Of a stretch of DNA of 64,000 nt, positions 15,603 to 62,000 are shown piece by piece. Below the pieces are notes generated by a model that saw only the letters and a list, made by a program, of their open reading frames with translations, searched no databases and was not told the origin of the DNA. Every line of letters begins with the position of its first letter. The stretch's first letter is position 1. The DNA lies in contig NC_068993.1 of NCBI RefSeq assembly GCF_001194135.2, positions 1,500,030 to 1,564,029 of the forward strand, in the 5' to 3' direction. The position numbers and the translations under genes were made by a program. This stretch comes from Octopus bimaculoides (Eukaryota).

Positions 15603-16342
15603 TTATTTCCTTGACTTTACTTGCTGACCACCTCTAACACAAAGTGGTTTGTTGGTTAGGTTAGAACTCAAGGCAGGGCTTTTAGCAGTTCTTGCTGAAT
15701 TCTTTTTAGTTTCATTTTTCTTTGGTGGAACCGTCTTAATATTTTTGTCTTTTCCTAAAGATAATTTTGGTGCCTTTTGACCAAAATTTCTCTGGTTTGT
15801 ATTATTGGGTTTTAGGGAATTCTCTTTATCCTGTATTTTCAATTGAGGACAGATTTTCTCTGTTTGGTCTTTACTCTTTTCAATGGACAATTTTGGTGGC
15901 GCTTTGCTAACTCGAGCCTGGTTTGTGTTACGAGGTTTCAACACAGCTTTCGATAATCTGCTGATAAAATTTCCAAACGAAGACCTTCGGTCAGATTTCT
16001 TTGGTTTGTTATCTGGGCTTAACTGGAAAAGAACTGGCATTTCTGGAACAGTGCTCACTTCTTTTTTGGTAAGGGTATTACTCGGTGTTTCAAGATTAAG
16101 ACTTTCAAGGGTAAATAAGCTTTCTGGCCGTGCAAGTGGTGCCTTCAGTATCTCACCATTTTTTATTTCACATATTTCTTTATATTTGTGCCACTGGTTT
16201 TCACCAGAGACAATACTGTCCGTGAAATCGCTTTGGCTTCGCACATGGGTTTTCTTAAAAGGCTTCGATGAACTTTCTGAACATGTAGCTTGACTTACTT
16301 TGGTAAAAGGTGCTGTGTGAATTTTAAATAGCATTGTCTTGG
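15603..16342 (-). CDS. Formin last coding exon, basic Ser/Lys/Pro-rich tail
   Basis: Acceptor tttag at 16343, phase 1 matching the previous exon, open to TAA at 15603 (KTMLFKIH...QVKSRK). Confidence 0.8.
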
Positions 16343-19300
16343 CTAAATTGGTAAATTAACAAATAATAATAATAATAAATAAAATCTTGGAATATTATAT
16401 AAATTCAATGAACAGATGAAATTCAGACATGAAAATTAACAATTCTAACTATACCTCAACATTAACTGTTATAGTAAGATTGAAATCTATTTATAGTATA
16501 ACCAGGGACCAACCTCATTTCACAGCTACAGTAGCTGCTGCATTAAAACAGAATGGTTGTGGTATAAACCATTGGCATGGAGAAGAGGGAAACGAGGGTT
16601 GTGATGCTCAAATCTTTTACAAGAACATTAATAATATCAAACATGTGAAATAGCCACAAACAAGGATGTAAATCTTAGTCTTGGTTAATTAACTGTTTGT
16701 TTTATGTTCATTTTTCTATGCTGACATGGGTCAGATGAATACAAATTACTGAAGTATTGTTTTAAGGCCAGATATCCTTCCTGCCTGTCACTACATCATA
16801 CCTGTTTTACAAGGAAAGAATTAAAAAAAATTCCTTGCATCTTTGAAAGTGGTGAGCTTGCAAACAATTTATTGACAGGGGATGCCAACAAACTTTGCTA
16901 TTTGGAGCTTTGCAGAGAATGTAAACATTCACACACACAAGCTTCTGTACAGATTCCATCTAACAGATTCACTCACAAGGAATTAACTAGGCCTAGGACT
17001 ACAGTAGATGTCACTTGCCCAAGGTGCTGTGCAGTGGATTAGAACCTGCTACCATATGGTCGGAGAAGTGAACTTCTTGACCACGCCATATAATTGAAAT
17101 AAAAATGTTTTACATACCAGAAGAAATTTTGTTTTTCTGTGTAATGCGGAAATCAGTCAATGTTTCGTCAAAGTCATCTTCGTCTTCTGGGAGTTTTATT
17201 TGACTTCCAGCAAAACTGATTCGACTAAAATTCAGATGATGTTTAGAAGCATCACTTCGAGCTGGAGTACTAATCAAATTATTAGGTTTTCCAGCAAATT
17301 TCTCAAAGTTACCACCATGAACCTCTTGAAGGATTCGATCCATTGGACCTTTCTTGTTCTCCAAAGCAGATGAACATGCATCTGTGAGTAAACAGAAAGA
17401 AATTCAGACAGAAATTCATAGTTTTATAATTTACAAAAATAAAGAGAAAAATCCACGAAAATGGCTAGTTTAATTGAGAAACATTTTATCATCATCATCA
17501 TCATCATTTAACGTCTGTTGTTCCTTCAAGAGAAAACAGGGAATCAATAAATATTTCAAATAGTTATCAGCCTATAGATTCGAACCTCTTCATAAAATAA
17601 TTTTGATGCCGACACCGTCTAAATGAAATATTGTATCTTACAAAGAAAACTTTACAGAAATATTATTGCTGTTAAGCAAAATATCAACAGGAATATCAAC
17701 TGATGCCAGAATTGAGTGAANNNNNNNNNNNNNNNNNNNNNNNNNNNNNNNNNNNNNNNNNNNNNNNNNNNNNNNNNNNNNNNNNNNNNNNNNNNNNNNN
17801 NNNNNNNNNNNNNNNNNNNNNNNNNNNNNNNNNNNNNNNNNNNNNNNNNNNNNNNNNNNNNNNNNNNNNNNNNNNNNNNNNNNNNNNNNNNNNNNNNNNN
17901 NNNNNNNNNNNNNNNNNNNNNNNNNNNNNNNNNNNNNNNNNNNNNNNNNNNNNNNNNNNNNNNNNNNNNNNNNNNNNNNNNNNNNNNNNNNNNNNNNNNN
18001 NNNNNNNNNNNNNNNNNNNNNNNNNNNNNNNNNNNNNNNNNNNNNNNNNNNNNNNNNNNNNNNNNNNNNNNNNNNNNNNNNNNNNNNNNNNNNNNNNNNN
18101 NNNNNNNNNNNNNNNNNNNNNNNNNNNNNNNNNNNNNNNNNNNNNNNNNNNNNNNNNNNNNNNNNATTTTATATAGAGCTGTTGTTATATTTATGATGTA
18201 GGTGTGGACTCTTCAAACTGAAATGAAACCAACACACACAAGGAGAGCAATAGCTGTGAATAAATACTGATATGATGTACAGGATACTCTTTATAGACCT
18301 GACAAACTCTCCAGTGCTGGTGGCACAATAAACTGCATCCAGTCTCTGCCATAGAATAGTCGGTGATATGAAGGGCAGCCAATCTACCTCTGACACAACA
18401 GAAAATATTGGTTTCAAATTTTGACACAAGGCCAGCAATTTTGTGGGGAGGAGGCAAGTTGATTACATTGACCCCAGTGCTCAACTGGTCCTTATTTTAT
18501 CAACCCCAAGAGGATGAAAGGCCAAGTCAACCTCAGAACATAAAGACAGACAAAATGTCACAAAGTATCTTGTCTGGCATGCTAATGATTCTGCCAGCTC
18601 ACCACCTTTGCAATGGGAAATATTGACAGTTTTTTTCCTATGCTGTACGTCAGATGGTGAAGGAGAACAACAAATAGCAGAATGCTGTCACACCTGTCCA
18701 ACCCTTGGCAACAGAGAAAAGTGAATATTAAACGAAGATCAATGCGGATAAATATGTTATAAAAGAAGAATTGCATTAGAAATCAGAACCCAAGTTGGCC
18801 CTGAATGAGTGGATCTATGATCAAAAGCTCTCCACACATGACAATCCCTGTACTACGTTAGCTTATGTGGCCTTCCTTCCCTTTTAAGATGGTACAGGTG
18901 TAATCTTAAGGAGATGTGACTATTATTTCTACAACATGAAATGATCACACAGCTCCAGGAGTCAATCAGAATAAATGACAAAGAAAGTTTCACTGAATTG
19001 TCAGTTAAATTAAACCCTGAACACCATCTGATGGTATCAAGAGAAATAAGTCAACTTACTCTACCAAATTCATTGAAGAACCAGAAAATTGCTACCATTA
19101 CTTACTGTACGACATTTCTTTACTGCTTCATAGAATTCATGGAGATCTTGGAAGCACTTCTGAAGGCTGAAATCATCGACGTTTTCACAGAAGTAACCAG
19201 CTACCTTATGAGCCAATGTTCGTAAAAGTCTCAACCGTGTTTGGAGTTCACCAAATAATAATTTCACATCCTGAAAAATATTCAGGAATTTTTTTTTCTT

Positions 19301-22300
19301 TTTGATTGAAAAAACATTTTTAGATCAACATAATTAATAGTGGAAAGACAGTGTGTAGCTAAACTGTTTGTTATACAAAACTAATTATAATAATAATTAC
19401 TTGCTTAGGAATAAAGTTAGATTTAATGAGAGGAGGAAGGACAGGACTGATGACCCTTTTTCAGTGTCTGCTGAGGATGGTGGCAGGAAAGAAGTCAGTT
19501 AGTTTGGTCCAAATGCTTGCTCTACTAAAGATACCCAAGTGTCAGATGGTGGTGCTAAATTTGGCTGACAAATTAAATGACTTAAAGCAAAACAGCTCCT
19601 TGGACAAACGTCCACACAATTTCCATCTACCAAATTTCACTCAGCGACAAGAAAAAAAATTCAATGAAACCTCAAAACCTCACCTTGATAAAAATACTAA
19701 ATAAATTGTTCACTTCCTGGTCAGCTTGACTGAGTTCTTTCAGAAACTGCTTTAAACTGTTACTCAATGCCGTTACTTCATTTCGCGTCTCATCCAAACA
19801 ACATCTTTACAGGAAAATAAAAATAAAAACATTGGTTGCAATTATTCATTTTTATGGAAATGAAAACAGTTTGATTTTGAAGTAGAAAAAGAAAAAGATT
19901 GCTTACGCTGCAGCTTTCTCCAGAATGTCTGCATCAGCAGTGAACATGAGAACCTGTTCATCGTTTTCTTCAGCCAATTCCACTAAATGATGAAGTAAGT
20001 TGAAATAGCTGAATTCGGTAGCTTTTATTTTGGACACTTCAAGCAGACTTGATAACTTGAAACCATACGCACAGCCATAACAGCTTTCCTATAAACCAGA
20101 GAACATATAGAAATATGCATCACACATATATAATAGATAAACATACATATACATACACACAGAGGTGAGGTGTACAAATTTACCCTGTAAACCATATATG
20201 TGAGTCGGGGGTCGGATTAATGTTGGATTTTATGTTCAGTTATGATAAAATCAATTTTGCATAAATCTAAAGGGCTTACTCCACAAATATATCCGACAAG
20301 TCAAGTGAGACCAGCCCATTTATGAATACCCCTCATTCATTGGACAATAAACCTTGCTTGTGAAGACCTATTGAGGCAAGTGAAATCAAAATTCCTGACA
20401 TGGCTGACGACAATACCGCCTGACTAGCACTCGTACCAGTAAAAGCACATCCGAGCATGATCGTTGCCAGGACTACAGATTGGCTCCCGTGCTGGTGACA
20501 CATGAAAAGCACCATTTGAGCATGATCGTTGCTAGCGTCGCCTTACCAGCACATGTGCCGGTGACATGTGAAAAACATTTGAGCATGGTCATTGCCAGTG
20601 CTGTCAGACTGGCTCCCGTGCAGGTAGCACATAAAAACACCTTTTGAGCATGATCGTTGCCAGAATCGCCTGACTGGCCCTTGTGTTGGTGGCACGTAAA
20701 AAGCACCCACTACACTCTCGGAGTGGTTGGCGTTAAGGGCATCCAGCTGTAGAAACTTTGCCAGACTAGATTGGAGCCTGGTACAGCCTTCTGGCTCACC
20801 AGTCCTCAGTCAAACCGTCCAACCCATGCCAGCATGGAAAGCGGACGTTAAACAATGATGATGATGACACATATATGTATTCAGAAAATAGAGAAATCAG
20901 AAATAGAAAATAAGGAATAAACAAAATATAAAAAGAAAAAATTTGGAAATTATTTACCTGGTTAAGGTAATTACCAGCTCCCAAAATTAAATGAAGGAAA
21001 TCTCTCAAGCCTGCATCTTCTAAGACAGTTTTGCAGGCATCTACCATGCTACGAATACTGGTTCGCAGTTTGACAAATTTGATAAGGAATTCTGATTGAA
21101 GGAAATGACCTCTCAGTATCAAATGGAAATCGTTGACATCAGATAATTCAACAAGGAACTGTTCAGTTGGGTGAAGAAGCAATCTTTCACCTTGGTAAGA
21201 ACGAAGTGCTGCCACCTACAGGAAATACAGTTTAGAATATTTTAAGAACACTGTTTTTTTTTATCTTTGGTCGACTAATACTTACGATTGTTCTAAATGA
21301 TTATTTTAATAGAGTAAAATAACTCATTAAGCACAAGACATGGGATTCTAAAAGCAAAAATATATTTGAGAGCCAATGCTGTTGATAGAAGAATTAGGAA
21401 GTTAAGCATAAGTTTTCTCTAAAGTTTTAATTTAAAGAATACGTTATTTCATACTCACTTCTTCTTTAGTTGGAAGAATCTTGATAAGACTCGACAGAGT
21501 GGTCTGAGGTATGCTAGCAACATTGTTCTCTTGTAAAGCTCTGACTAAATCCTCAGCATCATATTCACTTCGTGTAAGAAACAGTGTGACATTCATCAAA
21601 GTCTGCATTCCGACCAGCTGCCTCGACGAAGATTGATAAAAGAAGAAATGAAGAGATAAATGGGAAACATTTAACAACAAAAACAAATTGTGTAACTCAA
21701 GTGGACACATTAAAGGACTCCAGAAATATTTCTGAGTGGATTATTGAATAACAATTGGTGAACAAGTGTGTGATTGATTATTAGTTTCTAATGGATCATC
21801 ACTGGCTTAATGCATTTCTGATAAGAATGACAAGGGGAGTATCTGTAAGTTGGCACAGAACAAATATCACAATGGACTTTATATCAAATGTACCAATCTT
21901 TATAGATGTGCATCAGCAAAATGTAAACACACAACTACACACTAACACACATCTGCATACATGACAGGCATCCGCACCAAACTCTACATGTATGGTATCA
22001 ATCAGCATACCATTATGAGAGGCAACACTGGCACCAAATACCAGACAGTGAGATCAAAGAGAGAACAATGTTGTTGCAAAACTTCTAAACCTCACAGATT
22101 CACCTGCACTTTATAACGTAATGGAGAGATTTAGTTTAGTCTTACTTACATGGGTATTTTCAACAGGAATATTAGAATAAAACAGGTCTTCCATTTTACT
22201 AAAATTTGGTATAATTGGTAGAAAGTCATTACTGGATCTCCAGATGCAATTATCTGATTTCTCTGTAAAAAAGAAAAAGAAAAAAAAATCAATAATAAAT

Positions 22301-25300
22301 TATAATATTTGTATAAACCATAGGAAGGTCATGTAGCCATAGAAACCATGCCAAATCAGACTGGAGTCTGGGACAGACCTTCAGCTTACCAGTGCTAGAC
22401 AAACTATCAAATCCATACCAGCATGGACAATGGACGTTAAATGATGATGATGATGACTTTAGAAATTTATATAATAGTCTAAATCCTCAACTGGATGAAG
22501 TATATTACTTAAGTATGATAGAGAGGCCAGGAGCCAAGTGTCTTTACTGAAGAAGTGAATACATAGAGAAGCCAAAGTGCAAGGTGAATATGAAAGAAAA
22601 CAGGAAGAAAATGGGTGGGTAAGTTAGTAAGAAATAATAATTTTGTACCGATTTCTTTTGGTGTTATTTTCGACCAATGGATTTTCTTCAATTTCTTTGA
22701 TGGTGTGAAACACATCCATAATAAAAGTTTGTCACAATTAGTGTCAAACAGATTCTTTTCAGTTCCAAATGGGTATTTAATTACAGGGGCAGCATTTCCT
22801 TCTTGACTATCACTGCTTCCTTCACAAAGAGAATTAATAAAATTATCTTCCTTCAGAATGTCAAGATCTTTGTCGTACACTTTCTTACACTTCTGACCGT
22901 CTGTCCAGACTGGTTTCTCTCCCGATTGAATTTTGGGAATAAGGTTTTCAATCAGCTGCCATTTCTCTGAACTAAAGACAACAAAATAATAATAATTAAT
23001 AAAGATATTTTAATGAACAAAAGGTTTACCTATAAATAACTTCTAAAGAAAAACAAGAAACTAAAAGTATTTATTTAGAAAAAACCTTTTGTGAGGGGTG
23101 GGGGGAGGGCAGGCAGTACCCATGATTTTTTACATGGTTCCCAGGATTGGCTTTGGTGGGAGGTTGAGAAGGAGGTATCCTTAAACTGGAAACCTGCCTC
23201 AAATGCTTGCAACAAAATGGGGTCCACTAAAGGAACCTCCAAGGTGCCTGGTGGTGATGGTGTTAACCTGACAATGGTGTCTACGACTGATGGAAAGTAG
23301 TTCTTTGTGGATATTTATCAAAACTGCCATTCTTTTACTTGTTACAGTCCTAACAGTGTGGCTAAACTGCAGCACTTCTTTCAAGAATCTATTTGGTTAC
23401 ATAAACACCTTGGTACATCACTAATATTACCAACTTTAGCATGTAAATAAATATTAGCTAATACTCAAGATATTTTGTCCAAGACAATACCAATTCTAAC
23501 AGCCACCCAAGAGAATAAACAACATTTAACCTAAGATGGAATAATTCTAAACCATTAACAGCTCATCTTACAGAAATGGAAGGAAATGGTTTGTGGTTAT
23601 CTCCCTTCAATGACACGAAATATATAAATGCAAACCAGAGGGAGTCTGGTTCTCTGCATTCTGGGTTCAAATTCTGTCATGGCTTACTTTGGCGGTAGAC
23701 TTCATCTCCAGCCCAGTTTAACATTACCATTTCCTAACTCTTTGGTGCCTCCAGCAGAGTTCATTTCATCTCCTAACTATTTAGTACCTCTAGCAAGAAT
23801 TCATTCTGTTGCAAGTATTCAGACCAGGTCTCCCTTCCTCTCACCAATCTCAGGGACCCAGAAGGGAGCAATGGGCAGGGCCCTTCATTCTAATTGAGCA
23901 ATAAATAAAAGAATATTCAATGAATTAACACATGGGGCAAAGTAAAAAATTTTCTTTACTTTTCTTCGTTTTCACTGTTGTATTCAAGGGAGAGTAAATC
24001 TTGTAAAATGTGCAGAAACGATACATATTTCGGTGTTCCCAGAGTCTGGAAAATGAAAACAAACATCAGAGAAAGTATTTAATTTCTTCAATATATCATT
24101 CAGCAATGAAGCTAACAAACTAAATTCATTACTTCAGTAACATTAAAAGAGTTAATGAGCAGAGAGAGAGAGAGTGTGTGTATGTGCATGTGTGTTTCCA
24201 TTTGTGCTTCTCTGAAAACCACTCAGATACAGAGAATGGTAATGTTACTTTTGTTTTTTTCTTTTCAATAGGCAATGCTGCTGGTTTTGTGCCTTCAAGG
24301 GCATGGTATAGGAATTCCCTTGCTTGAAAAACAAGAGTAAGTGACAGGAAGGGCATCCATCTGTAAAACAATTCCTTGATATATTCATCTAAACCATACA
24401 AATGACACTAGAGAGTGCCTTTGGCACAATCACCAATATTAACAACGATAGCATTAAATCATAATTTCTAACAGGGGCACAAGGCCACAAATTGTGGGGT
24501 AGTGGAGGGGAGTGGTTGATTAAAACAATCCTGGAAGTTGATCTCAGTAAGATTTGAGCCAGAACATAAAACAGCCATTAACCACAGAATTTCATCAGTT
24601 ATTTTATGGTCTCAGTCAATCCATATATTTTGCCATTTTAAAGAAATTTACCCATGATATCAACTAGTCAAGTTGGAAAATATTTAATACAACAGATAAT
24701 ATATTCTGATATTGTTGAATCTGGAGATATCAGGCTTTATATATATGAGGAATTCACACTACCTTTTCAATAATAGAATCCAATAATGCTGAAGGGCTTT
24801 GGTAATCCATCTCAAATTTGGTCTGCATGTCTTCTTCATCTTTGTGCTTTTGAGAATAAAATGCCTGCAAGGAGAAGAAAAGCAAAACCTCAACATCATC
24901 ATCACCATAATCACTCTCAGCACATTTCAAATCCGTTTTCTGCTAAATGGAATTGGTTAAAAGGGGTGGGGGTACATTACAGCCTTCCTTTCTCCTGGCT
25001 GGACACTTTTACTCTTCACAAATATTTCTGACAGAAAGAGTTAAGAATATATTTTTTTTTTTACAGCACTAAAACAACTTTCCACATGTTATTTAATTTA
25101 GCCATTGTACATTGGAACAAAAATATTTTTTTTAATAAACTGTTAAAACTTGAAATTTCTATTATAACATATTTTGGCTACAGTTCAAAACGATTTTCAC
25201 AAGTTTCTGGTCGTGTTGATTAAACTTTCAGCGGCAGAACATAAAGTTTCAGAAATCTAGTTATTTGTTGAAATTCTTATTTCCCAAAAGAGTAAGTTTA

Positions 25301-28300
25301 ATTAATCTACATTCTTATTTAAAGATATAGTGTTTTGAAGTGGATGGACAAAGGTGAAATAATTTAATTAACTAAAATAGTTCTGTTAGTAACTAAAGAA
25401 ACTAGTGGGATATCAGAAATTAAAGTTGGGAAAATATGAACACTAATAACATAGTAATGTCAAAATTTGAAGCCTCATTCGAACTCCAAACCAATATTTG
25501 TGCCTTCACACTGAAGATATTATTGCTAGGCAAATGTCACAAACTGATAGAGGAGAAAGAAGAAACCATTCTAATTAACACCTGTACACACCTGGTATCT
25601 ATTTTAACCACTATCTCCTGATACAAGAAAATCTAAAAATGACAAACTGACAAGAGAGCCTTAATGAAGTCATTCAACCTTCTAGAAATAGCAGCCAACT
25701 CTCAAATCACCCACTCATATTAAGAAATTGAAAGACACGTTGGAAAATTTAATCCCTGGTAGCATGATCACAGCCTGATTAAAGATCCGCTGGATCAGGA
25801 ATGGCCGGGAGCTAAACAACAACAAAAATATGGTATACACACACACACCAGATGAAACAATTTGCACAAGAATATAAAAATGGCTTCAAATTTAATATAC
25901 TAATGGTCTTGAAAATGTAAAAAATGAGAAATATTTTACCTCTATTTGAATTTGAAAGTCTTTATCGAATTCTTCAGCATGTAGAACACTGAGAGTATCC
26001 AAAAGTCCAAGACCTAAATAAAATGGAATTATATCATAATGCTTAAATCAGTAAACACACCTGAAACATCATTCCATTAAAATAACTATGTATTTAATAT
26101 CTATAGTGTATATACAAATGTAGAATGGTGCCAGCTGTGTAATATTTGGTCTCAGAGAAATTTGTTCTAAGAGAGATTTTGTGCATTAAAAACACAAAGT
26201 TCATTGAGAATGTCATCATCAGCAAATTGCAAGACACCACTGCTTCAACTTGCTTTAGTTTCCACAGTGGTGAATACTTCCAAACATTCCGATCATATCC
26301 TGAGATCTTCACATTCCAGTGTAGAAATCAGCAACCAAGACAATCACTGATTTGTGTGGTGCCTGTGAAATGTTGTTGTTGTTCCACCCTTCGTAGTGTC
26401 CAGCTGATTGTCATCATTAGTTTTATTTGGATCTGTTGCACAATCAACTTTAGGTGTCTTTATTCTGTTGTCACATATTCAAACATCTGCAACAATTTCC
26501 CTTCTCAATACTACACTCAAACTGCTGTTATACAACCTCTAGACGAAGTCTGTTCTTTAGAAGTAAGGAATACCCCCCACCCTTGACCAGCGGTAAAATT
26601 TAGACTCCAAATTAAAAAAACCACCTGATGACAAAATCTTTAAAAATAAAATAAAAATTCAAGCCCAAACAATAATTTATATCAAAGACATGTTAACACG
26701 AAGAAACAAATGGAAAGTGCTGGATAAAGAATAAAGTTCTTGAATGATGTAAATATTTAATTGAACTTACTAATAAACTCATTACGGATCTTGTTCCTTC
26801 CTTGCAAACTTAAATTACCATTAATTATACAATTAATGGCAGTCAGGATTGTACATTTGTAAGCAACTGTCTCAGTTTGAGTTATTTCTGTGACTAAAAT
26901 ACTAAAACGGTGAGCTTGATCAGTCTCTTTCTGAAATGGATAACAAAATACATGTTCATTTATGACAAAATACATGTTCATTTATGACAAAGTACATGTT
27001 CATTTATGACAAAATACATGTTCATTTATGACAAAGTACATGTTCATTTATGACACAATATATTTTAATTCATGATGAAAGATGTGCTAATTTAGTTTTT
27101 ATCTAAGTAATAAATCTAACATTAATCCTCATCTTAATCATCAATTTAACTGTCATTCCATTTAAGTTGTCTGAGCTTTTATATTTAATATATTTTCATG
27201 TAAACCTAATGTCTAAAATTTATTCTCATCTAAATCTATAGCCTAACATGCATTTTCATCTAAATCTTTAGTCTAATATTCATTGTCATCCAAATCCTTA
27301 ATTGAACACATAATTTCTAAGCGTAACCTTCATTCTGATCTAGGTCCTTCTTCAATGAAGCAGAAACAGAGAAAACCTTACTTTGTAATAATTCAAAGCT
27401 TCAAGAACAGCATAATAACTCTGTGGGCTGAACATACAGAGAACCGATAAGATTTCAAATAATTCTTTCTTCGTCATGCTGTGGTTGGTGTTTAAAGCTG
27501 CAACAAAAGACAACAAGATAATCGTTACATTTTCACAAAACCTGATAAACTTTGAAATAAGAAAAACTTTACATTATTTACATCTAATGGATATTTGTCC
27601 TCATCTTGTCTGTTGTTTCAGTAGATTTCCATCAAATGTAAATAATGTAAATAATTCCTCATCTCTTAAATGGAGAACTGTAAGAATAACTGCTTTCCAA
27701 ATCTATAAAACTATTTAAAAAAAGACTTGCTTTAACAATTTATGTAAGTCTCCCTAATTATTGCAAAGTTTTAATTGTGTGGTTGGTGTTAAGAAGGGCA
27801 TCCAGCCATAGAAATCATGCTAAACCAGACTGGAACCTGGTACAGCTCTCCCGCTTACCAGTTTTCAATCAAACCGTCCAACCCATGCCAGCAAGGAAAG
27901 CAGATGCTAGCGTGAAACCACTAAAACGTCTTGGAAACTGATGAGAAAATCAGCGGTGAATGTTCCTTGTTTCATGATTTTGTCTTCCTTGTCTGTCTGT
28001 TAAGTTTCTGCCCAGTTTTCATCTATTTTTCCTTTCTTTGTCGAACATTTTAAATATATATCATCATCATTTAACGTCCGTGCTGATTACATTGACAAAA
28101 TGTAACAGTTATTCGTTAATATCAACTGGAACAGCTTCTTATAGTGTTAAAGAATTTACTGAATTAAGGACTGAATCATTTTCTATAAATATACAGTGAG
28201 AGAGAGAGAATCAAACATATATAAACAAACTGGGTGTCTCATAATAATGGGACACGTTTTGGGTGCAGATAACTAGGATTGCAACAATGGCAAAAGTGAA

Positions 28301-29015
28301 GAGCCACAATTTTTAAATTACAAATTAAAGGGGCCCTGTCACTATAAGACACTCTGTGTATGTATATATATATGTAAGAGTGTGTGTGTGTAAATATAAA
28401 AGTAAATATACACATGATTGCTTTGTATGTGTGTATTTGAGATTCAGTCTTAATTGTTTTTGGAATTAAATTTCCCCTTTGCCCAGTAGATTTCACTCTG
28501 TAAGGATTTGAAATACATTTTTGGTTAGCACCAACCTACATTTCTATGGCAAGCCCTGTCCAACAGATGTTTTGGCTGATCATTTTAATTGTGGCCATGG
28601 CGCCTTCCTCCTTCTTTAACAAGGAAAAATGATAAAACAAAAATAAGAAAGATAAAAGATATTCAGATAGAGACAAACCTGAGGTCAGTTTTTTCAGGCC
28701 ATTTGGAAGTTCCAATATATGCATCATGCCAACATCGGTGCTCAATACTGTAGTAATACAGTTAAGACAATCAAACTGTAATATGGCATCAGAAAAGTTA
28801 GAAGGGCCCTGAATGGTCATTGCACAGAGACTATCCAGAAGACAGGTGAGGCCACCATTTTCTAAGAAATCCAACAGCCAAGAACTGGTGGCATTTTCAA
28901 TGTTTGATTTGAGGGTGTAGAGGGAATTCATGGAAGGCGTACAAGCCAGGGCAATGCATTCTTCAACTGTTTTTTGAACATTAACAACAAACACATCATA
29001 AATTGATGCATCCAT
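15603..29015 (-). CDS. INF2-like formin (DID-FH2-DAD, no FH1), whole spliced CDS span, more than 1060 aa
   Basis: 15 GT-AG exons with continuous phase except across the gap at 17721-18165. The translation follows inverted formin 2 through the DID, FH2 lasso (IHWSKI, CIW), GNYLN and DAD (MDRILQEV) motifs. Confidence 0.9.
17118..17381 (-). CDS. Formin exon containing the DAD motif
   Basis: Acceptor ttactcacag, donor G|gtatgt. ACSSALENKKGPMDRILQEVHGGNF carries the MDxLLxxL DAD core. Confidence 0.85.
17721..18165. other. Assembly gap probably hiding a formin exon
   Basis: N run. The flanking exons end in phase 0 (19106) and start in phase 1 (17381), so a 3n+1 exon is missing. Confidence 0.65.
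19106..19270 (-). CDS. Formin coding exon 13 (end of FH2)
   Basis: tttttcag|DVKLLFGELQ...YFCENVDDFSLQKCFQDLHEFYEAVKKCRT|gtaagt. Confidence 0.9.
19684..19804 (-). CDS. Formin coding exon 12 (FH2)
   Basis: CCLDETRNEVTALSNSLKQ...SIFIK|gtgagg, phase 2 to 0. Confidence 0.88.
19907..20088 (-). CDS. Formin coding exon 11 (FH2 post)
   Basis: ESCYGCAYGFKLSSLLEVSKIKATEFSYFNLLHHLV...EKAA|gtaagc. Contains the FH2 GFKLSSL motif. Confidence 0.92.
20395..20868 (+). mobile_element. Retroposed repeat (family B) with internal 60-65 bp tandem units and (GAT)n tail
   Basis: Units start gcatgatcgttgcc and the 3' end is ggacgttaaacaatgatgatgat. Homologous copies or fragments lie near 22320-22460, 27785-27910, 42440-42900 (minus), 46300-46555 and 50830-50960 (minus). 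Confidence 0.75.
20958..21215 (-). CDS. Formin coding exon 10 (FH2, GNYLN motif)
   Basis: VAALRSYQGERLLLHPTEQFLVEL...LILGAGNYLNQ|gtaaat. Confidence 0.93.
21459..21617 (-). CDS. Formin coding exon 9 (FH2 knob)
   Basis: LVGMQTLMNVTLFLTRSEYD...LIKILPTKEE|gtgagt. The acceptor gaggcag is the only in-frame one nearby. Confidence 0.85.
22150..22262 (-). CDS. Formin coding exon 8 (FH2 lasso/linker)
   Basis: tttttacag|EKSDNCIWRSSNDFLPIIPNFSKMEDLFYSNIPVENTH|gtaagt. Confidence 0.9.
22649..22971 (-). CDS. Formin coding exon 7 (end of DID/DD, linker, FH2 start)
   Basis: tctttag|NSEKWQLIENLIPKI...FTPSKKLKKIHWSKITPKEI|gtacaa. No polyproline in the exon. Confidence 0.9.
23960..24045 (-). CDS. Formin coding exon 6
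   Basis: ttttccag|TLGTPKYVSFLHILQDLLSLEYNSENEE|gtaaag, phase 0 to 2. Confidence 0.88.
24763..24864 (-). CDS. Formin coding exon 5
   Basis: ccttgcag|AFYSQKHKDEEDMQTKFEMDYQSPSALLDSIIEK|gtagtg. Confidence 0.88.
25940..26013 (-). CDS. Formin coding exon 4
   Basis: ttatttag|SLGLLDTLSVLHAEEFDKDFQIQIE|gtaaaa. Confidence 0.9.
26771..26930 (-). CDS. Formin coding exon 3 (DID)
   Basis: catttcag|KETDQAHRFSILVTEI...RNKIRNEFI|gtaagt. Confidence 0.92.
26943..27060. repeat. 22-bp minisatellite, 5 full copies
   Basis: Unit acaaa(a/g)tacatgttcatttatg in tandem, A/G variant order A,A,G,A,G. Confidence 0.95.
27382..27497 (-). CDS. Formin coding exon 2 (DID)
   Basis: ttgttgcag|ALNTNHSMTKKELFEILSVLCMFSPQSYYAVLEALNYYK|gtaagg. 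Confidence 0.92.
28679..29015 (-). CDS. Formin coding exon 1 (DID N-terminus); the exon begins at 29071 with 5' UTR
   Basis: Acceptor tctttctttcag at 29072, ATG 29015, MDASIYDV...WLLDFLENGGLTCLLDSL...DAILQFDCLNCITTVL...KKLTS|gtttgt. Confidence 0.9.
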
Positions 29016-31785: not shown

Positions 31786-32461
31786 CAAATAATAAATGAG
31801 TATATGCATATATACGTACAGGTATGTGCATACCTACGTCTACCTGTATATATAGGTGCATATCTGGGTACAGGACATTGCAAACAAAACATAGACAAGA
31901 AAATAATAATAACCAGAGTACAGAAAACACACAAGCCACATAGAGAACATTTTCCTTCATCAGNNNNNNNNNNNNNNNNNNNNNNNNNNNNNNNNNNNNN
32001 NNNNNNNNNNNNNNNNNNNNNNNNNNNNNNNNNNNNNNNNNNNNNNNNNNNNNNNNNNNNNNNNNNNNNNNNNNNNNNNNNNNNNNNNNNNNNNNNNNNN
32101 NNNNNNNNNNNNNNNNNNNNNNNNNNNNNNNNNNNNNNNNNNNNNNNNNNNNNNNNNNNNNNNNNNNNNNNNNNNNNNNNNNNNNNNNNNNNNNNNNNNN
32201 NNNNNNNNNNNNNNNNNNNNNNNNNNNNNNNNNNNNNNNNNNNNNNNNNNNNNNNNNNNNNNNNNNNNNNNNNNNNNNNNNNNNNNNNNNNNNNNNNNNN
32301 NNNNNNNNNNNNNNNNNNNNNNNNNNNNNNNNNNNNNNNNNNNNNNNNNNNNNNNNNNNNNNNNNNNNNNNNNNNNNNNNNNNNNNNNNNNNNNNNNNNN
32401 NNNNNNNNNNNNNNNNNNNNNNNNNNNNNNNNNNNNNNNNNNNNNNNNNNNNNNNNNNCTC

Positions 32462-34514: not shown

Positions 34515-34700
34515 ATAGGAGCAACATCGAACTCCTCCGTTTATCCAGACATAGAATATGTTTCTAGTTCAACAGATGACTCACGACTGAACTTTAAAAA
34601 TGGCGCCGTTTTTTTGAGAGCCGTTGTTGTTGTTGTTGTCGTCGTCGTGCCAACTGCGTTGCAATGTACCCGGGTGACAGCGGTGACAGCACTCACACAT
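34515..34700 (-). promoter_or_regulatory. Candidate non-coding first exon/promoter of the formin gene
   Basis: Locally CpG-rich patch with an AAAATGGCG (YY1-like) motif and a consensus minus-strand donor t|gtaagt at 34514 that could join the acceptor at 29072. The upstream boundary is a guess. Confidence 0.4.
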
Positions 34701-40383: not shown

Positions 40384-40693
40384 ATGTCGTCAAAAGAAAC
40401 AATAAATACATCTGAGAAGTTGAAGAATCTGCGGCGGCGGTTGGAGCAGCTTGGTTATAAGGATTCTCTTGGAATTGAATCTTTGCCATTGGTTGAACGG
40501 TTGTTTGTGGACCTGCTGAAGACAATTGAAGATCTTCGTAAGATCAAAGTAGAACATTCCAGAAAAAGTGATGCAGAAGATCCAACAATTGTTGACTCCT
40601 ATAAAAATGATAATGCTAAATTGGTTAAAGAGAATAATGCTTTAAATTTGAAACTTCTTAAAGCAACAGAACAAAATAATACTGCTATGAAAG
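40384..40693 (+). CDS. CEP135: CEP135 coding exon 1 (exon starts 40353)
   Basis: [25 protein letters not shown]...TAMK G|gtttgt. Confidence 0.93.
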
Positions 40694-41748
40694 GTTTGTA
40701 CAAATAGTTTACTCAGTTATTATTATTATTATTCCTTAATTCTTGATCAGATTATTGAGCATAACTTTAGGTTAAATATCTATCACATTTGTTCAAACTA
40801 TTTATCATTGTGCAATTAACAGCTTCATTTCATTCAGCCATCACACTTTCTGTTCAATGCTTTTGTTTTCCTATCATGCAACTTCACACTTCATAAACAA
40901 GCACCATCCAATCTAACCTTTACTTAAAGTGAGCATTTCTTAGTTTCTAGTAAAGATAATAACTCCTTGAACTCAGACCCCTTGTTCTTACTCTGGCTGC
41001 TTTGGAACACCCTTTTCCACTGCTAATTAGGGTATCTAGGTAAGACAGGCTTTCAACCTCTTCTCAAGAACCCTCTGAATATCTGCGAAAATTTATTCCA
41101 TGGGTGCCCCTATCTGCTATATTTAAAGTTCTTCTTCTCTGTCAGGGATTTTGTGTAGCCATACTTTACATTGGGTGTACCTTATGGTATTTCTACCCCC
41201 CCCCCTTTTGCATATCAAGTATGGCCACTGTCCAGATGGATGGACAATGGCTGACATCTTACCGAAGCAGTTATTTTTAGAGATAGTGGTACCACTTAGA
41301 TGTAGAATAAAATTATATTTTAGATTGTTATATCTATATTTTGCTTTACAGATCTCAAGTCTTCCCTGCGAAAATCTGAGCACACACTTGCAGATATAAA
41401 GTTCTTAAACAATCAATATTTACATAAGATAAAGTTATTGGAGAAAGAATCTAAAGAAAAATCAGACAGAATTCAACAACTGCAAGAGAAAAACTTCCAT
41501 GCTGTGGTTCAAACCCCAGGTCAGTGGATTTTTTAATACATTTTTATATATAATCTTTTAACTGTTTCCAGTTATTGGTCTGTGGCCATGCTACAACACC
41601 TATTTCCTAGGGTTTTAGTTAAACATATTAACTCCAACTTATTCTATCGACTCTGTTTCTCAAATCACTAGATTGTGTTTTTGATATAAAGAAATGTAAT
41701 TCAACAGACCTATTTTTTTTCTACCATGCTACCAGACATAATCAAAGA

Positions 41749-53000: not shown

Positions 53001-56000
53001 GCAAAGGTGAGCAGATTCTTGTGGCAGTTTAACTCTTTAAAAAGAAGTGGTGTAAAATAATTTAGGTCTTATATTTATTTTGGTTTAAGAAATAATAAAA
53101 TCTAAAGAAATTTTAGTGATGATCACATCAACATTTGGTAATTAAAGAGTTTAGAAGTAAAATAACTAAAACAATAAATATATAGAAATATTTCCATCTT
53201 TTTAGATCTCTTTTCTTTCTATTAATGAAAAATAACAAAGAGTTATCATTTCTTGGCATTTCCTTTTGCTAGGAACAGACTTTTCTTTGAATAATTTATC
53301 TTGATACACAAAGCCATACAGTCTTTCTTTTGATAATACTTTCAGCATCAAATTCCAATTCACCAACAGTACACCTGACCCCCGCCCCGCCCTCATTTCT
53401 TTTTTCTTTAGACTTTTTCACCGTTATGTTTTCTGATGAGTTGTGGTGCAGCACCTGATCACTGAGTGCAATAAGTTCATTATTATTATTATTATTATTA
53501 TTATTTAATATTCGAAACAAGTGATACAGTAATTACACTGATTGTAATTACTTGTATAGGGCAGTGGTGGTGGGTATGTAAGGGTTGGAGAAGATAATTA
53601 CTAATATCAGATTAAAATGATAATCTATGCTAAATGTCTAATTATTATCAGCCATGTTAAGAAATATGACTCTATAATTTTGGTTTTGGTTTGGTTCCAG
53701 AAAGAACTACTTAAATCACGGCAACAACTTGACGATTTAGATCGTTGTATATCACAGCTGAAGTCTGTAAGTAGTTTATAAGAGGTTTCTTGTTTATAAA
53801 AAATATAAATTTTACATTTTGTTTTATGATTGGCAAAACTTGAAAAAATATATACAAAACCCAAGGTTGTTGTTAGAAAAAATGAGGGCAGATTCTGCTG
53901 TGGCCCTTGTTGTGGTCAAGATCTCAGGTTTGTGAGACTGATGTGATTGATAGTCATCTGAAACATCTAGCTGAATGGTATCATTGAGAACCGGACAAAC
54001 GTGCGGCTTGCCAGTGACCCTTCATGTATGATCGATAAAGGTATGCTGGTGGAATTCCTCTTTTCTCATCAAAATATATGAGTTGTTGAAGAAATAGTTC
54101 AAAGTGGGTGATGGATTACATTTACCACCCAAATACAAGAATGGACCCTCTGATGAGATTCTTCAGTTTCTGCCTTCCTCATTAAACTTTCAAGGCCCCG
54201 CGAGAAGTCACTTGCCTAAGGTGCTGTGCAGAGGAATTGAACATGAAACTATAGCTGCAAAGCAATCTTCATAATGACACTTGTCATGCCTGGATAGAAT
54301 TCTTTATTCCATATTGACACAGTTCTCCTCACTGTCTGTAGAAATAGGTACCAGCTCACCTGGGGAAATCACCCGTGGTAGACTGGTGTCATATCCAGGG
54401 GATTTATCTCTGTTTTATGCCATGAAACTAGAGCTAAATGCACTGGGCCCTTGGTGTAGGAGATTTGAAATATTTTGATAATCTTAAATTGTAGGAGAAT
54501 GAACAGCTCCAAATGGAATTGGAAGATTCAGAGACTCAGAACAGCAATAAAACAACCAGCCTGAAGAAACTGGAGATGTTGCTGGACAAAGTTCAAGAAG
54601 AAAAACGTCGCATGATACATAAAGTGAATAAACTAACGGCCAACGGTAAGTCAAGAAATCATCATCATCATCATCAGCAGCAACAACAACAGCTTATGTC
54701 TTCTTTCCATGATGGTATGAGCTGAAATCATTAATTTGATTTAAAAATTATTAATGAAACAACATCAACTTCTGTTTTTTTTTGCTGAAGAGGAAATTAA
54801 TTTCAGTTGAGTATCAGCAGGATAATTTGTCCTTGCAATGGTAGATTAATTGTTCACTCATATTCATAATGAAATATAAATATATATATGTATATATGTG
54901 TGTGTGTATGTATATATATCACTCACAGATCTCTTAGTTTTATGAACTGAGGTGAATAGGATGCTAAAGAGGTTTAATGATATTGAAACATGTCTATTGC
55001 TTTCACCAGCAAAAAACAATAATAAGACAGTGAAATGATTCACAGGAAATATTGTACAACCATACAAGAAAAGTTTACCATTATTCTTAACTTTAATTTC
55101 CAATGTTTCTCAAAACATCTTTTTATATACAGAGTCTGTGTCGTCTGTTTATCAAAAATACAAATATCTGAAGAAAAAACAAAAAAATAGGTTTTTTTTT
55201 TTAATAATTGCTCACAATGCTGAAATTTTCTTTTTTGTGAAAATATTTACATTCTGTTGATGTCATAAGGATTTAAGAACTTCAAGAATGTGAAATAATT
55301 CTTTATAGGAAGAGTGAATCTCAAAGTAAATAAATCTCCAATTAAGTCTACATTGAGTTAAAACATTTGGGATAGAAGTCAAAGGTTGCTTGTGGGACTT
55401 CTTTTTAAAATGTTTTTGGTTGTTATTTATAGCTTTATTTGCTTCAAGTTCCACCGTTCTTTAAAAGAGATTACATTTTATTTTTTAAAAATTTTCTGAT
55501 ATCAGAGAAAGAACTGATTTTAGAGAATGAACAGCTAAAGCACAGAGGCGCCATAACCAAAAAAGGTAAAGTTCCACCTCGAGTCGAAAGTTTGATTAAA
55601 ACTCTTGAAGAAGACCGAAACTATTACCGTGACCAAGCTGCGAGTCTACAAAAGACGATACAAAATGATTCGAGTGGAAACAGCAATCGGAAGATCACCG
55701 GTGGGTCTAGACTGACTAGGTCCAGGTCAGCAAGTCCTAATAAAGAAATGATATCTCTTCCTGATAAACTTGACAAGAAGGTGAGTCGACTTTATTGTCT
55801 AAGCTTATGCTCAGAATTGTTTAGGAATGTAAATAAAAATGTCTGAGTTGTGGCAATCAATCGGAGTGGATCTTGTAAAACAGTCCCAAAATAATTTGGA
55901 CCAAATTCATATTTTATATCTTTCAGACATTAAATGAAAGTTAAGATTAAAGAAATTTATTTTTAAATGATTTCCTAATAAGAGAAAGTATTACAAATTT

Positions 56001-59000
56001 TTGATGTTTTTTGTTTTTTTTTAATGTGGAAAGAACTCAGCATTTGGTACAATTTGGGAAAAAAGAAAGGAAAAAACGTTTGTTTTGTGTCTGTAATAAC
56101 ATCTTTTACTATTTCTGAGAAGCCTTTCAGGATTTTAGCTGTGACTAACCTGAATTCTATTTTGGAAATTCTCTTCAGAAGAATTCTGGCAAATTTGAGA
56201 TTCTTGTTGTCTAAAATTCTGTTTTACAGAGGTTTGGTTGCAGGCTTCACATTTAATTAAGTTGAAACAAACAAACAAAATTTTAAAAATATATTTTCAA
56301 GTTTTGCAACAACTAAAATGAACACCATTGAATAAATAAATAAATGTTTATTTTTGGCAAGAAAAAAAAAAGTGAGCGGAAGTAGTTAGTATTTAGACAG
56401 TTTTTCTTTGTTCCTCATGAGACCTGTGATAGAATATAAAACTAACGGTTGGGTGCCAAGCCATTTTTAACATAGTGTCTACAATTCCTTTTTTGTCAAT
56501 GCCATGATGCCATTGTGAAAGATCGGAATTACAATTAGAGTTTTCTGGTGGACTTTTCACTTGGATATTGTTAACACATCGACGGCATTTGAATTTATCA
56601 TGTGTGTCACTCTTAGTGTCTTCATTCAGTTGAAACAAATTTCTTAAATCTTCCCGGCTAAAATGCCTCTCTGCATCTTCATTATCGACCACACAACTAC
56701 TTAATGCCTTTTTGTGTGCTTGGCGCTGGAAGATCATTTCTTCAATTGAGCCAGTGGCAACAAGTCTGTAAATGTAACATTGCTTCTTTTGTCCATCACG
56801 CCAACATCTGGCCATAGCTTGGTCGTCATTGGCTGGATTCCAATCAGGATCAAACATCACTAAGCGATTAGCGCCAATCAAATTAAGGCCACACCCACCG
56901 GCTTTGCTACTGAGCATGAAAATAAATGCTGTACTGAGTGGATCATTGAATTTTTCAACAATTTTTGCTCGTTTTTTCACCGACATTGTTCCATCAAGTC
57001 TGACCCAGGAATAGTTTCTCTGTTTACATAAATTTTCAAACAAGTCTAAAGTATTTGTGTAATTAGAAACCAACACTACTTTATCATTGGAGTTGGCTTT
57101 TATCACAGCCAGCAGATAATCTAACAAAAGGAATTTACCAGATAATTCTGGCAACAAAATTTTTGGATTATAATTGCCAGGAAATACCCCAAGACAGTTT
57201 TCAAAGCCATCAACCTGTTGAATGCATTTGTCATAAATCAAATCAGGGTGGTTACACAGTTTCTTCAAAGATGTGATGGCTGCAAGTGAACTTGCTGTCA
57301 TTTTCCCATCTCGGTTTTCAATTAAAGCTTGAGCAGCTTTAGATTTCACAAACCGTTTGTACAATTCCATTTGGATTGGCGTCATATTACAGCAGATAAC
57401 CTGTTCAATTTTCACGGGGAGATATTTTGTTAGTAGTTCTTGTGTACGACGAATAATACATCTGTTGACTGTTTCTAATAATTCTTTTAGTTTTTCTTGA
57501 CCTTTTTGGTGTTCAGCATCAGAAGCATCAGCATCCCTTCCTCGAAGAATAGGATTCTCAAAATTCTTCTTGAATTCTTTAGCAGTTCCCAAAACTCCCA
57601 TATTGACAAAGTGAACTAAACTGAAATACTCCAAAAGATCGTTCTGGATTGGTGTACCAGACAATAACAGTCTTTTCTGAACATTAAGTTTGTCTAATGC
57701 TTGGTAGGTTTGGTTCTCTGAGTTTTTGAGTCGATGTCCTTCGTCACAGATGATCAGACCTACACTACCCTGGTGAAGTACTGCTGCATGAAGTCGGAAT
57801 GTCTCATAGGAAATAATTAACACGTTATTAGTGATTCGGTGACCCTGTGATCTCATGAAGTGATTTAAATTGCGGTCAATTTCACTCTTACTGCCCGAAT
57901 CCACCACCAACGGGTTTATCTTCCCCGGTAACCATTTATTGATTTCGTTGGCCCAATTCTTGACCAAACTGCTGGGAGATACAATGGCAGCTTTGTTAAT
58001 CATTGGACAACAGTCTGGACTCTGGCGAAGCAGTGTCCACATTAATGTGATACACTGCAACGTTTTCCCTAAACCCATTTCGTCAGCCATTATACAACCG
58101 TAACTGTTTTCTATCTGTTGTCCAGTTACACAATCGTACATAAATTTAACCCCTTCTCGTTGATGAGGACGTAACACTTTGGACAACAAAGGGTCAACAA
58201 CTACATGGACAGGCAACTTTTCAGAGTTCATTTTCACCAGCTCATGAGCTGAGAGTTCCGGTGGAGAATACAAAATCAAGGCCCCTTCTTCGTCAGGGTC
58301 GTGCAGAGCATTTCGAGTTCCTTGCCTACGAACTCCCAAAGCTTTACTGGAAAGCGTCGCGCCTGTATAATTTAGAATTGGTATTCGGAAAGGCTTCGAT
58401 AAGATTTTACGGATAAAGGCCTCATGTTCAGAATGATTAGGTGTGGCGTATATGAATTTATTGTTGTCAAGGGTTGTCAAAGCCGGACGTTGTGATGCTG
58501 ATGATGATACTGATGATGTATCAAGAGGTCGGCATTTTTTAAACTGAGTGAAATGGTTAACATCATCGAGTTTCCTTTTACAGGTTGATACTTTACTCGG
58601 GGCTAGACTTCGCCGCATCCTTCTACCACTCCGACTAGATTTATCACCAATACAATGTTGTGTGTGTGTGTGTATTACAGTAAAATACTTGGTCTAACAA
58701 TCGGGAATATTCAAAATAAACATGGTCGACGACAATAAAAATGTTCTTTTTTACAAAGTTTGTTGTTTAATACGAGAAAATTTACTCACTTCTGTCGGCA
58801 GCTAACAAACACTCATAATTAACTCGTAATTAATTAATAATTAACAGACAATGATCGAAATGTCTGTTTCCACGTTTACCCGCCATATTATTTGTAATCT
58901 GTACAACGCCCTCTATCCACGTTTAACTTCATAAATCAGAGTCATCTCCCTTGTTTCGTCTACTTTCGTTTGTTTTCCTTCAAATGTCTAATTCCGTTCA

Positions 59001-62000
59001 AAATTTGAACTCTCTTTGTTTCTAATTAAATTTCAATTGGAAATTTCGTCTTTGCAATGTTTTTGCTCAGGTTTTCATTTTTTAAAAATTTGTTTCTCTC
59101 ACCCTTTACCTTTGTTCTGAAATCGCCCCTCAATTCACACCTGATGTCTTGAAAAGAAAGGATACATTGAGCTGTTTAGACTCTCAAATACAAAGAGGCA
59201 GTGATCATGGCTGGAGTGCCTTCTGCGCAGAAGTCTGCTGGGTCCTGGTCGAATGGGATTAAAAAATAACACCAACAAAAAGCTTTCCGGCGATCTTTCG
59301 GTACGAATCCTAAATATCGGCCTTTTCCGTAAAAAGTGTCTTCGGCGATCTTTACCAAAGATCGGCCTTTTCCATAACACCCGCACGATCTTCGCTACGG
59401 TGTTAGGGTTAGGGTTTTAGTGTCAGAGGGACGGAATTCCCTAACGCAAACCCTAAAACCCAAACCCTAACCTAACCCTAACTCGAAACCCTTCAAAATA
59501 AATCGCGCTCTCTGTATGTCTTTCGCTGTTATGACGTCGTTTCCCTGTTTCTCTCCAACACTTTTTACGGAAAACGCCGATCTTCGGTAAAGATCGTGGA
59601 AGACACTTTTTACGGAAAAGGCCGATATTTAGGACTCGTACCGAAAGATCGCCGTGTTGTGGTTAATGTTTTATTGAAAGCTGAGAATTTCTTTTGTGCA
59701 GAACAAAAACAGGAATTTAGTCATGACAATGAAATTAAAAAAACTTAACTTCATATATAGCTGTGTATATATATGTGTGTGTGTTAGTGTGTGTCTATTT
59801 CTATATAGATATGTATATATATATGTATAAGTTTCGTTGTGTGTTTCCACATACCAATAGTTGTTTGTATATTTATATTTTTAGACAATTTCTCATTATG
59901 AACGAATATGTCAGTTGTTGGAGCAAGAACGTGATTACTTTAAATCCGAATACGAACAGCTGAAAGCTATCAGGAGATCCACGAGTCCCAAACGTCCTCA
60001 ATCTAACAAGGTGAGATTCCATTCTTCTGCTGTCTTTGGGAGAAAACCTTTCTAAAAGAAGTGGATGTCAACCTTAAATGACTTCAATTAGTTTTAGTGT
60101 TAACATAACCAATGAAGTGAGCATCAATAATTAATAAGAGATAATTGCATGACGAGGAAAAGACAATATCACTCAATGATTTGTATTATTTTAATAAACT
60201 TGGCAAGTGTAGGAGATAATTCCAGTCATGTTTCAGTTTTGTTAAGTCTCTTCAGCAAAGTATAAACTTCACTATACTTGCTAAATTAATGAAAAAAAAA
60301 ATTCCTGAGTTGGTGTACAATATTGTACATGCAACACACACACAGATTGATTATTAGTTGTTTCCTCAATGTAAATGACAGTTTTTTTACTTTAGTTTTG
60401 CCATTTAGCCTCCCCTAATTGCAGAAACCTATGGTTGAAGATATTCCAGCCATATTCTTCCCAACAGTTTCCAGTGCACAAGAAATCTTGCACTAAATTA
60501 TCCCATGTGTCCCTTTATATTAGGAGAATGTAATTTGAGAGAGAGCTAAATACTTGTTCTTTCAAGTCAGCTAATTAGAATTCAATTATTAACATAATAT
60601 ATGTATATTTAGCCTCATTCTGGCAAGGGTTATCTCCCTTAATCTTTGTATTTAGAATTAACCATTAAACTAATAAGTTTTTCTCGCCATGGTTAATTTA
60701 CTTTTTAACTGTTCCATGCTATTCAACGGATCTGTCTACGTCTACCTTGTTCTCTCGTTTCTTTGGACAGTATATTACATGAGAAAAAGTTGCCAGCCTC
60801 GGGCTTAACCCGTTCCTATTTCTTGAAGGAAAGGAACACTGTGAATGGTTTTCCACAGCACTTTCACGGCACTGTGAACTTGAATTCTGAGAGAGAGAGA
60901 GAGAAAAGTTCTTTAATTCGATTCGATGTAATTTTAATTGTTTGAACCATTTTCGTTGCCTTAGCTTATCACCACCCAGCTGCACTCTTTCACAGGTTCC
61001 TGCGACTCTGTTGCCATCCAATTCTATTATTCATATTTGGATTTGAGATTTGAGTCATGATGAATCTTCTATTTGTTGATTCCATCGGATGTGTTGCAGT
61101 TACTCTCTTGATTGACCTTGGTGACTCTGACCGTTGACCTTCTTGGATTCCTCTGCTCAGCATCAATGTAAGAAGCACCATTGGCTTAGTTGAGCCCTTC
61201 TGCTAACCCCTTCACTGCCCACTGTGCTGCAGTCCCATGACTTTGCTGCATCCCTGGCCAAAGGGCAGCCGGGAACTGTGCAGGTTTTGGTTATTACTCC
61301 ATGAGCCATTTCCAAAGTTCCCACCTACCCTAGCACACAGAAATGATTGCATAATGAATTATTTGTACTAATAATGAGGAAAGCACAAAGATACTTGGCC
61401 TAGTGGTTAGGGGTTAGGGGCTCACAATCATGATAGCGTGGGTTCAATTCCTGGACAAGACATTGTGTCCTTGAGCAAGGCTATAGTCTCCTCTCCTGAA
61501 CATGAGAACCTGTTAGGTGCTGGTGCAGCCCTCTCCAACATCATCTGTCACATCTTAAATGTGCCACTGGGTCAAAAAATGGGAGGTGGATGACTGGTTG
61601 TCTGTGTCTGCTCATGACTCCACAGGCACCTAAAACAATTAGTGAAAGCATGGTAGATGCTAGCAAACCCTACTTGCTTGCAGTTGATGGCTGGCTCTTT
61701 CTTTACTAGTGATGATAGCAACCCTTTATGTTGCTCAGATGAACAGTTATGATTTGTCACTCATGTTTCTGAACATTTATTGTTAGAACCAGAATTTCAA
61801 TGACGAAGAATTGCAGAAAGCAAGAGAAGAAAGGGACAAGATGAAAGACATGCTTGAGAAATTTGAACGTCATATGAACGAGGTAAGAATTGTATGTGTG
61901 TGTGTGTGTGAATTGAAGGCTAGGCAGAAGACTGTACCATGCTTCACTGCTTTGGCATGGTTTTTATGGCTGGATGCCCTTCCTTACACCAACCGCTGTA

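Follow-up and report, generated by a model that had tools for sequence, protein, structure and literature searches.

We analyzed 64,000 nucleotides of the Octopus bimaculoides genome (contig NC_068993.1 of RefSeq assembly GCF_001194135.2, positions 1,500,030 to 1,564,029 of the forward strand; hereafter the window), in which an open reading frame (ORF) for RAD54L lies antisense within an intron of a second gene, the centriole gene CEP135. RAD54L is a SNF2-type translocase on double-stranded DNA (dsDNA) and a partner of RAD51 in homologous recombination, encoded by a core, single-copy gene. An earlier interpretation made without database searches (the sequence-only reading) had described the ORF as an intact, intronless helicase gene and proposed that it is an old and functional retrogene under purifying selection, perhaps the only RAD54L of its lineage. 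The features on which our analysis turns are these, in window coordinates:

56393..58618, minus strand: RAD54L coding sequence (CDS) without introns, 741 aa plus stop; ORF, Pfam, match to PDB 1z3i, dN/dS
56347..56352, minus strand: AATAAA hexamer, possible poly(A) signal, read from the sequence, 40 nt past the stop
55781..59884, plus strand: CEP135 host intron, 4104 bp, with RAD54L antisense within; GT at 55781, AG at 59883-59884
55506..55780, plus strand: CEP135 exon 5' of the host intron; acceptor tatcag/AG at 55505/55506, protein conserved
59885..60010, plus strand: CEP135 exon 3' of the host intron; boundaries read, 100% identity to O. sinensis and 89% to Argonauta
40387..40695, plus strand: CEP135 first coding exon (3' end approximate); ORF fragment that together with the next exon matches PDB 7bji

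RAD54L and its host gene

The ORF at 56393-58618 on the minus strand runs unbroken for 2226 bp, or 741 codons, from an ATG start to a TAA stop. At the window's G+C content of about 36%, we calculate a chance of approximately 1e-23 for 741 stop-free codons; the runner-up among ORFs that contain no N runs encodes 243 aa. Pfam assigns the product a SNF2-rel_dom (PF00176, 1.7e-78) and a Helicase_C domain (PF00271, 2.2e-22). Rad54_N (PF08658), the RAD51-interacting region, falls just short of its cut-off in the octopus protein (26.7 against 27.5 bits), and its precomputed match is stronger, and unmarked, in the protein of the Sepia cluster described below. Zebrafish Rad54 (PDB 1z3i) aligns residue by residue with positions 94-738 of the product at 1064 bits, and in this alignment the bipartite SNF2 core is present and ATPase motifs I, II, III, V, and VI are all intact, including QAMAR.WRDGQ, as the sequence-only reading had held. 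Other SNF2 families in PDB (ATRX, ERCC6) reach at most 263 bits. Among the matches listed, named RAD54-like proteins share 64-79% identity with the product over 100% of its length, and in a phylogenetic tree the octopus protein groups with mollusc and brachiopod RAD54L. Judged by its domains, motifs, and phylogeny, the ORF is a full-length RAD54L orthologue and not RAD54B, ATRX, or ERCC6. By orthology, its product would serve as a RAD51-partnered dsDNA translocase. The annotation of GCA_001194135.2 (chromosome CM046613.1) likewise shows RAD54L as one continuous span, located within a gene of 1244 aa that runs the other way. The AATAAA hexamer noted earlier is present past the stop; at a frequency of about one per 715 nt of strand in the window, it is weak evidence by itself.

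The intron that holds the ORF begins with a donor GT at 55781 preceded by ...GACAAGAAG, and its acceptor AG at 59883-59884 is followed by ACAATTTCT. RAD54L occupies 54% of its 4104 bp. The protein encoded by the upstream flanking exon (55506..55780) is 87% identical in O. sinensis, 77% in Argonauta, and 94% in an octopod contig from Logan (L002); in a decapodiform contig (L005) identity falls to 60% (E 1e-22). A search with the flanking-exon peptide retrieved no full-length host protein, and the host's identity came from CEP135 fragments in PDB. The N-terminal exons of the host, from about 40387, match two such fragments (7bji, E 1.3e-26; 5fcn, E 7e-16), and these matches confirm the predicted host gene as CEP135. 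The sequence-only reading had named this host, this intron, and a fill of more than half, and was right in all three.

Distribution, constraint, and transcription in cephalopods

The cluster of proteins at 90% identity to the octopus RAD54L includes O. sinensis XP_029644186.1 and Argonauta hians GAB1601650.1, and in both species the RAD54L CDS forms one span on the opposite strand between the same two CEP135 exons. A sister cluster, at approximately 80% identity, includes the 425-kb contig L005 from ENA. This contig carries an unbroken 741-codon RAD54L ORF together with a homologue of the 5' flanking CEP135 exon, antisense and 9.8 kb downstream of RAD54L. The sister-cluster protein is also present in 15 Logan contigs, of which two runs are Sepia esculenta larval RNA-seq, SRR23936175 (PMC10442824) and SRR20545811 (PMC10466719), and another, ERR12945500, consists of Acanthosepion esculentum short reads from a chromosome coverage analysis (bioRxiv 10.1101/2025.04.22.649952). 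Given the Sepia and Acanthosepion runs, we assign the sister cluster to decapodiforms. A neighbor-joining tree places octopod and decapodiform RAD54L in one clade, and none of six cephalopod RAD54L sequences has an intron in the CDS. No named Nautilus protein occurs among the matches, and the unnamed proteins from Logan, ENA, and JGI that we compared with the cephalopod sequences show no raised identity to them. The presence of the copy in Octopus, Argonauta, the decapodiform genomic contig, and Sepia places the nested, intronless RAD54L before the octopus-cuttlefish split, in keeping with the age that the earlier interpretation had given the copy.

We estimated the ratio of nonsynonymous to synonymous substitution (dN/dS) by the pairwise Nei-Gojobori method for unsaturated pairs only. 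For O. bimaculoides it is 0.13 against O. sinensis, 0.07-0.08 against the Logan octopod, and 0.02 against Argonauta, and between two decapodiforms it is 0.06. Between octopods and decapodiforms, synonymous sites have reached saturation (proportion of synonymous differences, pS, 0.82-0.88). At the protein level, 39 non-cephalopod RAD54L proteins have 264 invariant alignment columns in common, of which 253 (96%) keep the same residue in all 12 cephalopod sequences. Only three substitutions at positions invariant elsewhere have become fixed in cephalopods: P265N, V498L, and Q522N. These values indicate that cephalopod RAD54L is under strong purifying selection, as had been proposed, and behaves as a constrained orthologue.

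The intronless RAD54L is transcribed in Sepia esculenta larvae: contigs assembled from RNA of two unstranded libraries span the full CDS (L017, from SRR20545811; L019, from SRR23936175). The gene is thus not silent in Sepia, and in no unsaturated pair is its dN/dS near 1; a silent ORF with a dN/dS near 1 was an outcome that the sequence-only reading had set against itself. None of the Logan contigs terminates in a non-genomic poly(A) run of the kind that marks an mRNA 3' end. Alignment of GTRAGT in the upstream regions of six cephalopods made an intron in the 5' untranslated region (UTR) a candidate, which we rejected on finding ten contigs of the Sepia cluster, RNA-seq included, collinear with the genome through that site. 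Upstream of the ATG, Sepia contigs follow the genome without interruption for no less than 238 nt, the reach of RNA contig L017. The reported lack of introns consequently stands for the CDS and, in Sepia, for these 238 nt, and Octopus may have introns in its UTRs.

Ancestral locus and origin of the intronless copy

RAD54L genes of the brachiopod Lingula and the molluscs Patella and Solemya are organized differently. They span 7.3 kb, 24 kb, and 40 kb, respectively, and no host gene covers any of them. Exact spliced mapping yields 19 CDS introns in Lingula and 20 each in Patella and Solemya, with shared positions and phases. The first coding exon in these species consists of the ATG alone, followed by a phase-0 intron (ATG/GT ... 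AG/AGG; contigs L007-L009, positions 10001-10003). The octopus start region reads ATGCGGCGA... / ATGCGGCGAAGT; since ATGCGGCGAAGT is unbroken, even this post-ATG intron is precisely absent from the octopus gene.

In all three outgroups, RAD54L lies head-to-head with DOT1L, at 318-340 nt from ATG to ATG. We recognized the divergent gene by its first exon, M..ELKLHSP.GAEPA.Y.WP, which is the DOT1L N-terminus (E approximately 1e-6 to DOT1L in PDB; the Patella gene carries PF08123). The DOT1L exon of Solemya lacks annotation. This head-to-head region covers 9682-10003 of L007, 9672-10003 of L008, and 9660-10003 of L009, and the microsynteny is common to one brachiopod and two mollusc classes. The DOT1L N-terminal peptide was found neither in the window nor in the cephalopod RAD54L loci. 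From the outgroup introns and the DOT1L pairing we infer that the ancestral RAD54L had about 20 CDS introns, stood head-to-head with DOT1L, and lay outside CEP135. The nested, intronless state is accordingly not general to molluscs, a possibility that the sequence-only reading had raised against its own proposal.

Loss of every intron combined with the relocation of a single compact unit is what retroposition characteristically leaves, and it is from these two features that we infer an RNA intermediate. Under this scenario, a spliced RAD54L mRNA would have been reverse-transcribed and inserted antisense into the CEP135 intron in the octopus-cuttlefish ancestor. The retrocopy would then have gained or carried along a promoter, for which a conserved block upstream of the gene is a candidate, been maintained by strong purifying selection, and most likely supplanted its multi-exon parent. 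We hold with good confidence that the ORF is the working coleoid RAD54L, an mRNA-derived retrogene in the CEP135 intron and most probably its parent's replacement. The functional retrogene proposed from the letters alone agrees with the intron loss, the new site, the intact and constrained ORF, and transcription in Sepia.

What became of the parent can be approached from protein searches. With either the octopus or the Lingula protein as query, the best 120 of about 5,900 protein matches include no further cephalopod RAD54L; identity within these 120 is at least 64% for the octopus query and at least 70% for the Lingula query, and the database includes the O. sinensis and O. bimaculoides proteomes. 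This fits the suggestion that the ORF is perhaps the only RAD54L of the lineage. Given retroposition, we consider replacement of the parent likely but unproven. A functional retro-duplicate, with a multi-exon parent persisting elsewhere in coleoid genomes, could be missed by these searches, which list the best 120 matches, if the parent were diverged or unannotated. All bilaterian RAD54L orthologues are at least 64% identical to the octopus protein, however, so a conserved parent in the annotated proteome of O. sinensis or O. bimaculoides should have been listed, and none was; the constraint on the intronless copy is, moreover, as strong as expected of a sole orthologue. We therefore regard a surviving parent as unlikely.

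A DNA-level origin, in which the introns were lost in situ, perhaps through recombination between the gene and its complementary DNA (cDNA), and the gene then moved into the CEP135 intron, would account for the lack of a visible poly(A) tail and target-site duplications. Coleoid genomes are heavily rearranged, and in such genomes relocation alone is not diagnostic. This history nonetheless needs two rare events in place of one and has to explain why conservation between octopods and decapodiforms is confined to a compact unit of the CDS and short flanks, why this unit sits cleanly within an intron as retrocopies typically do, and why nothing was transferred from the DOT1L side; it seems to us very improbable. 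An intronless copy of a multi-exon gene is usually a pseudogene, and nothing else speaks for an artefact of assembly, contamination by cDNA, or a processed pseudogene that is dead but open by chance. The same layout recurs in four independent assemblies or contigs with collinear flanks, CEP135 exons included, and the ORF stayed open while synonymous sites saturated, by which these explanations are effectively refuted.

Several observations weigh against the reading of a retrogene that replaced its parent. Neither a poly(A) relic nor a target-site duplication is recognizable at the flanks of RAD54L, where an A-rich tract at approximately 55992-56022 is the sole poly(A)-like feature. The non-coding flanks cannot be aligned beyond Octopus, even to Argonauta, which is expected once synonymous sites are saturated. 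Loss of the parent is deduced from the best 120 protein matches rather than from a search of whole genomes. The split between octopods and decapodiforms gives the event a minimum age, with Nautilus outside the sample. The expression data come from Sepia esculenta only, and, the libraries having been prepared with a non-directional kit, some reads could derive from CEP135 pre-mRNA. Finally, cephalopod RAD54L proteins are 72-74% identical to those of Lingula, Patella, Solemya, and a chiton, which share approximately 76-80% with one another; the longer cephalopod branch could reflect change after retroposition or a lineage-wide difference in rate.

The candidate promoter is the following feature:

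58875..58952, minus strand: conserved non-coding block, candidate core promoter; invariant columns 169-246 of the octopus row in a six-cephalopod alignment

The block, some 260-335 nt 5' of the ATG, reads GGGAGnnnACTCT ... AGAGGGCGyT ... AATATGGCGs and is the only conserved non-coding block in about 500 nt of upstream alignment among the six cephalopods. As synonymous sites are saturated between these lineages, the block is likely functional, and we take it as a putative promoter. All three outgroup RAD54L promoters share ATTGG ... AAAATGGCGS ... TTCGAA, approximately 105-190 nt upstream of the RAD54L ATG; these elements resemble a CCAAT box, a YY1- or cell cycle-dependent element (CDE)-like site, and a cell cycle genes homology region (CHR)-like site. 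The coleoid block has AATATGGCG(G/C) on the same strand, and its 10-mer AATATGGCGG at 58880-58889 is one mismatch from the outgroup AAAATGGCGS. ATTGG and TTTGAA stand just before it in Sepia contigs; in decapodiform contig L005, ATTCG replaces ATTGG and TTTGAA is kept. With one mismatch allowed, AAAATGGCGS has 8 matches in the 64-kb window against 4.2 expected, one of them in the conserved block, and in the 22-kb decapodiform locus the copy in the block is the sole match. By our estimate, a match of this type would fall in the correct orientation in the 500 nt upstream with a chance of about 0.02. Overall similarity gave no such signal: a profile built with nhmmer from the promoters of the three outgroups had no significant match in any cephalopod locus (best E of 9, with matches elsewhere), and we rejected this route to promoter carry-over; only the short ATGGCGS-type motif is matched. 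That the retrocopy succeeded by carrying part of an ancestral bidirectional DOT1L-RAD54L promoter is a lead only, and one we think rather unlikely to hold. If it did, a transcript begun upstream of the motifs would have carried cell-cycle control along, and this would explain how a retrocopy came to replace a core repair gene of S/G2 phase.

Surroundings and relation to known systems

Elsewhere in the window, a multi-exon formin on the minus strand (approximately 15600-29015; Drf_GBD at 28536-29015, FH2 at 20796-21215) is divergent to CEP135, and both neighbors of RAD54L are indeed split into short exons, as first described. Between the formin and the first CEP135 exon, an exact AAAATGGCGC at 34597-34612 overlaps a copy of the opposite strand that has one mismatch, a pair that may mark a promoter region shared by the two genes. 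On the plus strand at 54495-54722, an open frame with a CEP135 exon runs on into a His5-Gln6 run, which may be coding sequence or intronic read-through. Runs of N with microsatellite-rich flanks lie at approximately 9260-9900, 17720-18170, and 31960-32440; as these are assembly gaps, ORFs that span them are artefacts. One further feature lies within the host intron:

59288..59654, strand not assigned: element of 367 bp whose 90-nt terminal inverted repeats are 93% complementary

This element encloses a palindromic, telomere-like TTAGGG/CCCTAA run and is situated some 670 bp 5' of the RAD54L start codon, outside the gene. Alignments of the window to O. sinensis and to octopod contig L002 stop exactly at 59288, and the element thus looks like a lineage-specific insertion of the miniature inverted-repeat transposable element (MITE) type.

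The intronless RAD54L may be of use beyond this locus. Its presence in a specific CEP135 intron is a discrete, essentially irreversible character for cephalopod phylogeny, a rare genomic change that would mark Coleoidea, or Cephalopoda if Nautilus shares the insertion. The DOT1L flank defines the ancestral site at which remains of the parent can be sought, and the short upstream block is a testable candidate for the promoter that a retrocopy needs. Having a single exon, RAD54L should lend itself to cloning and knockout in model cephalopods, and annotation pipelines should not call the octopus gene a pseudogene.

Compared with canonical animal RAD54L, as represented by PDB 1z3i and the genes of Lingula, Patella, and Solemya, the octopus copy has the same length, domain order, and ATPase motifs, but the cephalopod gene has no CDS introns, against 19-20, and no DOT1L pairing. 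Its layout is that of nested antisense gene pairs, a complete guest in a host intron, and is kept wherever both flanks are readable. The persistence of RAD54L with CEP135 is what linkage alone would give, and the co-regulation, transcriptional interference, or sense-antisense dsRNA editing raised in the sequence-only reading is speculative.

Replacement of a gene by its retrocopy is established, for example for amphioxus SYCP1 (PMC5803294), and an orphan-retrogene case is recounted for tetrapod Sowah (Maeso et al. 2012, PMC3317147, as cited in PMC5803294 and PMC12049793). Searches of full-text literature for RAD54 retrogenes and for retrogenes in cephalopods turned up no account of this case, and retrogene replacement seems undescribed so far in the cephalopod lineage. 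The present case is apparently new, well supported, and not without precedent; if complete, a replacement held since before the octopus-cuttlefish split would be rare for a core gene. It resembles amphioxus SYCP1 and tetrapod Sowah in having a multi-exon ancestor, a single-exon copy at an unrelated locus that would retain the ancestral function under purifying selection, and a parent that is apparently gone, a loss to which, for RAD54L, protein searches point. It differs from both in that RAD54L is a core homologous-recombination ATPase, lies antisense in the intron of another gene, and is, as a retrogene, common to a whole subclass, comprising at least Octopodiformes and Decapodiformes.

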